Source: Oculina patagonica (lineage: Eukaryota). From it: a DNA stretch of 64,000 nt. Below, piece by piece: positions 14,533-15,333 of the stretch. A program made the position numbers and the translations under genes. The DNA lies in the NCBI RefSeq assembly GCF_052425735.1, contig NC_135760.1, forward strand, positions 15,624,001 to 15,688,000. Direction: 5' to 3'. Positions within the stretch are counted from its first letter, which is position 1. Each line of letters begins with the position of its first letter. Under the pieces are notes generated by a model that did not search any database, was not told the origin of the DNA, and saw only the letters and a program-made list of their open reading frames with translations.

Positions 14533-15333
14533 TCACGCAGTTGGCGATGGAATTTCTAATGAAGGTCCTGGCGAAACTCTCAAATTCTCGTTACAATCGT
14601 ATTTATCCATGTCCTCAAAAAGTGCCTCTCTCTTGTTGAACTCGTACAATTGTTCCAATCCATTGTTTGATCCCTCCAAAATGGACTTGACCACATGATT
14701 TGGAACAAGTCGATTTTTTCGTAGTTTGGCTCTTTCGAGAACTGTTTCGAGAGGAACTCGAGGCAGGCGTTTCACGCGAACGTGATAACCGACTGATTTT
14801 AAGCGATGCATGTAGTCGATGAGTTCCAGAAACTTTACACAAGTTCCCTCTGCTACAAAGCTAATTTTCTGCTCCAAGATCCAGTCAGTGAGGTTAATAG
14901 CAATGTTACGTGCAATTGGATAGTATTCCTCCACTTTGTTTGATTCAAAACCTTTCAACATTCCCATAATTTCGTCTGTGTCTACGTACGCGTAGTTCCC
15001 GAAAACTGGATGCGTCTTAAATTCGTTATTAATCACAGTGGTTTTGCCTGCTCCCATAGGACCCAGAACAAAAATTGCATCACATCGATATTTCGTGTCC
15101 ATAAACTTTCGCTTCCACTTACTCTCTACAAGTTGCGTGTCTTGGGCATTGAGGAAGGAGTTGGAAATTTTCCCCTCGCTTGACTCCACTCCGTTGACAT
15201 CCTTCATATTCTTTGACATAAAACTTGTAGTAAACAAACGAACGAATACTTTAGCTCTACAAGAACGCGGAAAATGAAAGAAGGAAAGCCCTGAATTTAC
15301 TTGCAATGCAGTTCTACAAAACCGTGACGCCAT
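14533..15333 (-). CDS. Intronless zeta-toxin/AAA_33-like P-loop kinase (266 aa) with a putative mitochondrial presequence
   Basis: Walker A IFVLGPMGAGKTT, YVDTDEI, SFVAEGT, GYHVRV and the lid VPLETVLERAKLRKNRLVP follow the zeta-toxin/PezT motif order. GCC-ATG-G start context. The first 44 aa contain no D or E and are rich in R, S, F and L. Confidence 0.8.
   Translation of the reverse strand: MASRFCRTALQVNSGLSFFHFPRSCRAKVFVRLFTTSFMSKNMKDVNGVESSEGKISNSFLNAQDTQLVESKWKRKFMDTKYRCDAIFVLGPMGAGKTTVINNEFKTHPVFGNYAYVDTDEIMGMLKGFESNKVEEYYPIARNIAINLTDWILEQKISFVAEGTCVKFLELIDYMHRLKSVGYHVRVKRLPRVPLETVLERAKLRKNRLVPNHVVKSILEGSNNGLEQLYEFNKREALFEDMDKYDCNENLRVSPGPSLEIPSPTA

Follow-up and report, generated by a model that had tools for sequence, protein, structure and literature searches.

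The stretch of the Oculina patagonica genome analyzed here, referred to throughout as the window, comprises 64,000 nucleotides (nts) of contig NC_135760.1 (RefSeq assembly GCF_052425735.1). On its reverse strand, at 14533..15333, it encodes a 266-residue P-loop kinase of the zeta-toxin fold. The best overall explanation is that this gene belongs to a Cnidaria-wide family of zeta-fold kinases, captured in the stem lineage of the phylum, likely from a giant virus, later furnished with an N-terminal leader, and now acting as an organellar small-molecule kinase; we assign this reading a probability of roughly 0.6. On this account, the gene would have been taken up once, from a giant virus or from a source that giant viruses also drew upon, then inherited vertically and extended by an N-terminal targeting segment. 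The present protein, an ATP-dependent phosphotransferase with a core of ~21 kDa and a leader of ~45–60 residues, would serve as a host housekeeping or organellar enzyme rather than as the toxin of a toxin–antitoxin pair. An earlier, sequence-only reading of the window had recognized the kinase and proposed that it was a horizontally acquired zeta-toxin-like gene, domesticated with a host promoter and an organelle targeting signal as a mitochondrial nucleotide or nucleotide-sugar kinase or as an antibacterial effector.

The gene, its cnidarian family and its closest kin

The locus is a real, nuclear, single-copy, intronless and transcribed coral gene. Its coding sequence forms a single exon of 266 codons, running from an ATG start to a TGA stop at 14533-14535. 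Over 14507-15426, RNA contigs of two public runs follow the genomic sequence colinearly, hence the coding sequence lacks an intron. That these runs represent RNA follows from the neighboring BCL7 gene, whose exons are joined in the same runs by three GT..AG junctions (16111/16304, 16366/17040 and 17066/17273); the contigs also leave the intergenic segment 15444-15979 uncovered. Contamination and assembly artefact are ruled out by this RNA support together with the location of the gene on a 30-Mb chromosome, between host genes. The GC content of the coding sequence is host-like, at 41.7% versus 38.3% for the window, and a six-frame search of the entire 529-Mb assembly returned this locus as the only match to Zeta_toxin (PF06414). 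The intronless open reading frame (ORF) and motif order described from sequence alone, as well as the proposed check for expression, are thus borne out. Along the protein lie GPMGAGKTT (residues 91-99), VDTDEI (117-122), FVAEGT (159-164), GYHV (182-185) and RAKLRKNRLVP (201-211), and the transcript is unspliced.

Word-indexed and exhaustive (HMMER) protein searches of 1.84 billion cluster representatives delineate a family that forms ~110 clusters when grouped at 90% identity and is covered by ~27 representatives when grouped at 50%. Family members score at E-values of 1e-143 to 1e-19 and the next matches appear only from E 1e-12; in the exhaustive HMMER search, the gap extends from E 1e-28 to 1e-12. 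All named members are cnidarian: Stylophora, Desmophyllum and Montipora among the Scleractinia, Nematostella and Actinostola among the Actiniaria, Dendronephthya among the Octocorallia, and Hydractinia and Hydra among the Hydrozoa. No homologue was found in any other named eukaryote among these representatives, where a eukaryotic kinase family with pan-metazoan orthologues would have spoken for vertical descent. The family's restriction to a single phylum of animals makes a foreign origin plausible. A recent transfer into this coral is ruled out by orthologues in two cnidarian subphyla, Anthozoa and Hydrozoa. The genes of Nematostella, Hydractinia and a second coral are also single-exon, and the family is single-copy in Scleractinia, Actiniaria, Octocorallia and Hydrozoa. 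No description of this kinase family was found in the literature library searched, and databases list its members solely under automatic labels, for example “Zeta toxin domain-containing protein.”

The window protein displays the full family signature: FVLGPMG[AS]GK, Y-V-D-T-D-E-I-M, R-x5-LTDW, SF[VI]AEGTCV, RLK-x2-GY and R-x3-R-x2-R, preceded by an N-terminal extension. An alignment of 19 members (A1) contains 22 invariant columns. In a maximum-likelihood tree, the family is monophyletic (support 99/93) and its internal order fits cnidarian relationships, with corals, anemones and octocorals together and hydrozoans together, at weak support. Measured against the coral whose kinase protein is 83% identical, the ratio of nonsynonymous to synonymous substitution rates (dN/dS) comes to 0.17 overall, with the leader at 0.34 and the core at 0.097. 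The core is under strong purifying selection.

The closest known kin of the family are very probably giant-virus genes of the Mimiviridae type, not bacterial toxin genes, as judged from a sister clade of metagenomic sequences. The next-best proteins after the family are metagenomic kinases of 180–240 residues (P0112-P0129), at E 1e-12 to 1e-7 and 30–40% identity. Comparison of the family alignment with that of the sister clade (A2) by hhalign yields a probability of 99.95% (E 3.5e-38, 149 columns), and in the tree the sister clade is supported at 99/92 and its joint node with the cnidarian family at 100/99. Both clades share the signature GPMG[AS]GK[TS], R-x-I-[AG]-x3-TD[WY]LLE-x2-IS-x3-EGT and RLK-x2-GY. 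They differ at the N-terminus, where the giant-virus-like kinases lack the 45–150-residue leader of the cnidarian family and have ~30 residues ahead of the P-loop (compared with 54–170 in cnidarian proteins), and in the D-T-D motif of the cnidarian family, where the giant-virus-like kinases have a single Asp. No informative fused domain was found in the longer sister-clade proteins.

Five sister-clade contigs were inspected for gene content. The contig encoding P0116 is densely packed with genes for eRF1, a metacaspase, a GT8 glycosyltransferase, TatD, an Asp/Arg hydroxylase and a nucleotidyltransferase–phosphoesterase fusion. L006 (P0119; 32% GC) carries a eukaryote-type carbonic anhydrase, a receptor-L/furin/fn3 protein, RING, NUDIX and ClpP proteins and many ORFans. 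L010 (P0120; 31% GC) encodes a GH85 protein, and L009 (P0115; 30% GC) PIF1 and ClpP, while L007 (P0117; 56% GC) falls outside this giant-virus-like pattern. Both L006 and L010 are densely gene-packed and enriched in the octamer AAAATTGA, which we take to be the Mimiviridae early-promoter element. It occurs nine times in L006 (2.4 expected), always 30–160 nts 5′ of a gene start and in gene orientation, and five times in L010 (1.5 expected), with three of the five upstream of a gene start in gene orientation. The count and placement of the octamer suggest that L006 and L010 derive from Mimiviridae-like viruses. A search of viral structures in BFVD likewise retrieved zeta-domain proteins of Terrestrivirus, Yasminevirus, Harvfovirus, Tupanvirus and Indivirus. 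By contrast, tblastn of the core against 72,556 plasmids and 50,697 phages gave no match at E<=1e-3. When the family (A1) motif was scanned against IMG/VR and against 185,579 genomes of prokaryotic species, it produced pattern matches, none of which was confirmed by tblastn.

Kinase core, substrate pocket and leader peptide

The kinase core spans residues 62-245 (14599..15150; this and all further kinase elements lie on the reverse strand). In an AlphaFold model built from the 19-sequence alignment, it adopts an alpha/beta P-loop phosphotransferase fold, with a predicted local distance difference test score (pLDDT) of 83–96. The window protein matches Zeta_toxin in Pfam at 41 bits (E 1.8e-10, cut-off 22.3) and AAA_33 at 29.5 bits. 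By structure, Foldseek places zeta (1GVN, 3Q8X) at ranks 1-4 (E 2.9e-6 to 6.2e-6) and PezT (2P5T) at ranks 5-8 (E 9.3e-6 to 1.7e-5), upholding the original description as a zeta-toxin-like P-loop kinase. The Xanthomonas type III effector AvrRxo1 (4Z8T) follows at rank 9 (E 2.2e-5) and again at ranks 15-17. Bacterial and phage polynucleotide kinases (4GP7, the Clostridium thermocellum enzyme CthPnk, and others) occupy rank 10 and below (E 2.4e-5 and weaker); shikimate and adenylate kinases appear further down, at E ~8e-4 and weaker. Single-sequence and profile searches of the PDB yielded nothing significant, with P-loop-level matches only, NCBIfam gave only sub-threshold homoserine and shikimate kinase matches, and an ESM Atlas feature search returned only generic zeta-toxin clusters.

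The residues of general phosphotransfer chemistry are all in place. K97 of the Walker A motif GPMGAGKTT (15037..15063) is invariant and aligns with zeta K46 and with K15 of T4 polynucleotide kinase (T4 Pnk). In the DTDE segment (14971..14982), both D118 and D120 are invariant, and D120 occupies the catalytic-base position of zeta D67 and T4 Pnk D35. E162-G163-T164 (14842..14850) aligns with zeta E116-G117-T118, followed by C165-V166 opposite zeta G119-R120. The lid, RAKLRKNR (14710..14733), bears the invariant R205 and R208, the former aligned with T4 Pnk R126. A mechanism can be proposed from these correspondences, in which K97 and T98 would bind the ATP phosphates and Mg2+, D120 would deprotonate the substrate hydroxyl, and E162-G163-T164 together with the lid arginines R201/R205/R208 would stabilize the transferred phosphate.

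The substrate side of the active site is a different matter. In zeta, D67 is the catalytic base, T118 binds the beta-phosphate of UDP-N-acetylglucosamine (UDP-GlcNAc, or UNAG), R120 binds the UDP phosphates, E100 the ribose 2′-OH and T128 the uracil (PMC3062530). Alignment of the family profile to the pSM19035 zeta toxin (hhalign probability 85%, E 6.6e-6) retains K46 as K97, D67 as D120 and E116-G117-T118 as E162-G163-T164, so that T118 is kept as T164. Three of the five UNAG-contact residues are replaced, R120 by an invariant V166, E100 by I146 and T128 by Y174. Outside the P-loop, DxD and EGT anchors, this alignment is of low confidence and the E100 and T128 columns are the weaker ones, which counts against the preferred reading. 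Since the general catalytic set is kept while the UDP-GlcNAc contacts are replaced, the proposed role as a UDP-GlcNAc-kinase toxin is unsupported. With zeta and PezT, the cnidarian kinase shares the fold (TM-score ~0.5, Foldseek E 3e-6 to 3e-7 across the structure searches), the Walker A lysine, the D-x-D motif with its catalytic Asp, E-G-T and the Arg-rich lid. It departs from them in its sequence (17–20% identity only), in the replaced UNAG contacts, and in being eukaryotic, nuclear, leader-bearing and under phylum-wide purifying selection. Nor does an epsilon/PezA antitoxin gene adjoin it; no flanking ORF of at least 60 residues matches an antitoxin family, as had been noted from the start.

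The fold by itself does not dictate the substrate. AvrRxo1 phosphorylates NAD, which illustrates that a zeta-like fold accepts substrates besides UDP-GlcNAc (PMC5491322). In a comparison that covered fold and identity, this effector has the same fold as the cnidarian kinase; it differs in being larger, in having a partner chaperone/antitoxin and in sharing only 14% identity. The family-specific invariant pocket residues R142, L148-T149-D150-W151, V166 and Y174 would form a site that fits neither the UDP-GlcNAc site of zeta nor the polynucleotide clamp of T4 Pnk. These sequence and model comparisons lead us to predict an active phosphotransferase whose substrate is neither that of zeta nor that of Pnk. 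The expected substrate is a small, likely nucleotide-containing molecule other than UDP-GlcNAc, which would be phosphorylated inside mitochondria.

The mitochondrial assignment derives from the leader, residues 1-44 (15202..15333). It has a net charge of +6, no Asp or Glu and many Ser, Thr and Phe residues, and is disordered in the structure model (pLDDT ~40). D45 is the first acidic residue, confirming the length given for the acid-free leader by the sequence-only reading, and residues 1-40 include six R/K and nine S/T. An R-3-like R-x-F|T motif is present at R32-F34 (RLF|TT); leaders end in RFY|SS and RFY|TS in other corals and in RFY|IR in Hydractinia. The hexacoral orthologues repeat this pattern, with first 40–55 residues that are devoid of acidic residues, contain 5–9 R/K and are Ser/Thr-rich. 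The maximum hydrophobic moment is 0.41, moderate only. No signal-peptide h-region was detected: the maximum 10-residue Kyte–Doolittle mean is 1.39, in a stretch that includes an Arg. The leader composition and the absence of a hydrophobic core resemble the features of a mitochondrial presequence and argue against secretion, and a secreted effector is ruled out. Taken together, the leader is presequence-like, and these features make mitochondrial targeting moderately likely.

Alternative origins and functions

Transfer from a virus, or from a donor shared with viruses, into the cnidarian stem is favored on three grounds: introns are missing from the gene in all cnidarians examined, its distribution is restricted to one animal phylum, and the viral clade shows greater diversity and has no leader. 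One could imagine the opposite course, in which an old eukaryotic or cnidarian gene was captured by giant viruses of cnidarians or marine protists, or no transfer at all. Giant viruses frequently acquire host genes, many eukaryote-type genes lie on the viral contigs, and the two clades are reciprocally monophyletic, such that the tree, unrooted within this pair, gives no direction. An old cnidarian gene would nevertheless have to be reconciled with its lack of introns in genomes that are otherwise intron-rich, with its absence from other named eukaryotes among the 1.84 billion representatives and with the greater diversity of leaderless viral forms, and we consider the reversed course distinctly unlikely. 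Several further observations weigh against the viral capture proposed here. The viral assignment draws on the genes and a promoter motif of four among the five contigs, with L007 differing; the inspected sister-clade contigs showed neither a capsid nor a polymerase hallmark gene; the members of that clade are metagenomic and none is taxon-named; and on the cnidarian side three basal members (P0103-P0105), known from transcriptome or genome contigs, could be non-cnidarian. The most divergent of all members, P0105, lies on a 5.2-kb contig (L003) that is eukaryotic, 20% GC, and carries short SET and UPF0203 exon fragments; its organism is possibly an AT-rich parasitic cnidarian or a non-cnidarian eukaryote. 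Of lower standing still is the origin first proposed, a transferred and domesticated bacterial zeta/PezT gene that still phosphorylates UDP-GlcNAc as an antibacterial effector or as a mitochondrial UDP-sugar kinase. Its attractions are apparent: a Pfam Zeta_toxin score above cut-off, zeta and PezT as the best structural matches, and D-x-D and EGT motifs in common with zeta. That Pfam score is weakly diagnostic alone, since 13 of the 14 prokaryote genomes used as controls also contain PF06414 matches above cut-off. The UNAG contacts R120, E100 and T128 are not conserved, with R120 turned into an invariant Val, no bacterial, plasmid or phage relative was recovered by tblastn, the giant-virus-like clade is far closer, and a signal peptide is missing. 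The idea of horizontal acquisition survives as a plausible foreign origin in a single animal phylum, while its bacterial source is left unsupported. The effector and UDP-GlcNAc-kinase roles fare no better, with three of five contacts replaced and no secretion signal, and we regard this whole scenario as very improbable.

Function invites its own alternatives, the nearest being a mitochondrial polynucleotide 5′-hydroxyl kinase that acts on RNA or DNA ends in repair or processing, rather than on a small molecule. The essential kinase residues of T4 Pnk are K15, S16, D35, R38 and R126. Four of these five align with the cnidarian kinase, as K97, T98, D120 and R205 (hhalign probability 71%, E 3.7e-5), and CthPnk, T4 Pnk and mammalian PNKP all number among the structural matches; a polynucleotide kinase family, PHROG 505, also matches at E 5.6e-6. 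The fifth residue is telling. R38, the clamp for the substrate 3′-phosphate, is replaced by an invariant Met (M123), so the polynucleotide clamp is missing as well. In addition, Pfam detects neither a fused phosphatase nor a fused ligase domain, and the small-molecule kinases zeta and AvrRxo1 outrank Pnk in the structure searches, which together make a polynucleotide kinase improbable. The leader can be questioned in turn: rather than a presequence, it may be a disordered, fast-evolving extension of a protein that is cytosolic or nuclear, or that is made mainly from Met39. This Met is conserved and is where many coral gene models begin, and a shorter, leaderless and non-targeted isoform starting there is possible. 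A TATA-like element lies 4–9 nts upstream of M1, with TATATAAAA at 4–12 nts before the ATG. Moreover, the N-termini of hydrozoan members, which include acidic residues, and those of some basal members are less typical. All of these points weigh against organellar targeting. On the other side, RNA contigs extend 23 and 93 nts 5′ of M1 (one per run), and M1 lies in a strong Kozak context, with A at −3 and G at +4; an in-frame TGA lies 16 codons upstream. The leader dN/dS of 0.34, with no indels relative to another coral, likewise speaks against this alternative, and acid-free, basic, hydroxyl-rich leaders recur across hexacoral lineages despite sequence divergence. A non-targeted protein is accordingly judged unlikely, if far from negligible, and an organellar small-molecule kinase of giant-virus ancestry stays the preferred account.

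Surroundings of the gene and significance

Upstream of the start codon, the 5′ untranslated region (UTR) and proximal promoter (15334..15426, reverse strand) are covered by RNA contigs and contain a palindromic element resembling the cAMP response element (TGACGTCA, 15360-15367), a two-codon upstream ORF (ATG TTG TGA) and the in-frame stop; a CCAAT box follows at 15428-15432, within the promoter region 15334-15440. About 170 nts of this upstream region show 81% conservation in another coral. One species has an open upstream frame, which resulted in an over-extended gene model of 323 residues (P0007).

On the far side of the promoter lies BCL7, whose exon 1 (16015..16110, forward strand; Pfam BCL_N E 1.6e-11, GT..AG junctions) is outside the kinase gene and provides context only. 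The two genes are arranged head-to-head and divergently, with their start codons 681 bp apart, in agreement with the initial description. This pairing is local and lineage-specific, because BCL7 is not near the kinase in the second coral (not within 6 kb) and the neighbors of the kinase are different in Nematostella (GILT and OATP) and in Hydractinia (a G-protein-coupled receptor and Spindly); BCL7 adjacency is absent in all three, and the synteny that the sequence-only reading had suggested looking for in other cnidarians is not conserved. The downstream neighbor, a FAM92/CIBAR BAR-domain ORF (6947-7873, reverse strand; 308 residues, single exon, Pfam E 1.8e-22), is syntenic in the second coral (L008, the coral with the 83% identical kinase protein).

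The 3′ UTR of the kinase houses a miniature inverted-repeat transposable element (MITE) of 494 bp (14013..14506, no strand assigned), which begins 26 nts after the stop codon and is delimited by terminal inverted repeats of 40 nts that are 95% complementary. RNA contigs of other individuals omit exactly these 494 nts with ends that are not splice sites, and the 3′ UTR is therefore polymorphic for this insertion. Full-length copies of the element number at least 40, are 86–97% identical and lie dispersed over the chromosomes, which marks a young, recently active family. Farther along, RNA-contig depth over 13300-13835 reaches 280–2600, compared to ~25 over the kinase, and many RNA contigs break at 13786/13788 and continue into unrelated sequence; this segment is probably a repeat, either strongly expressed or present in many copies, that was inserted within or next to the kinase 3′ UTR. 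PolyA tag reads (X23, X24) were too few to place the 3′ end of the kinase transcript. Elsewhere in the window, a 248-residue ORF at 45758-46504 (forward strand) matches Exonuclease V (Exo5, PD-(D/E)XK; Pfam E 2.6e-39) and probably represents a large exon at the C-terminal end of the host EXO5 gene. Another ORF at 901-1719 (forward strand) runs through a long Ile/Val-coding microsatellite; its residues past the repeat do not resemble low-complexity sequence, and it may be an exon beside a simple repeat.

What had looked like a toxin in an animal genome is thereby moved out of the toxin–antitoxin frame. The gene defines a phylum-restricted and uncharacterized clade of zeta-fold kinases, conserved since the cnidarian ancestor. 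If both the viral origin and the mitochondrial location were false, an orphan host kinase is all that would be left. If both are true, the family would offer a clean and tractable case of ancient virus-to-animal domestication, accessible in Nematostella, Hydractinia and Hydra, all of which carry the gene, and it would add a new substrate specificity to the zeta/AvrRxo1/Pnk kinase fold. A bolder and quite doubtful extension is that a kinase of a Mimiviridae-like virus was captured more than 500 million years ago, then acquired a presequence and was retained by all major cnidarian classes as a mitochondrial enzyme peculiar to the phylum, which could phosphorylate, for example, a nucleotide cofactor, a nucleotide sugar or imported RNA. 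Cnidarian mitochondria are peculiar in their near-total loss of mitochondrial tRNA genes. Were the virus-derived mitochondrial enzyme real, it might be linked to this loss, and it would count among the most ancient and most strongly conserved cases in which an animal domesticated a viral gene for an organellar function.

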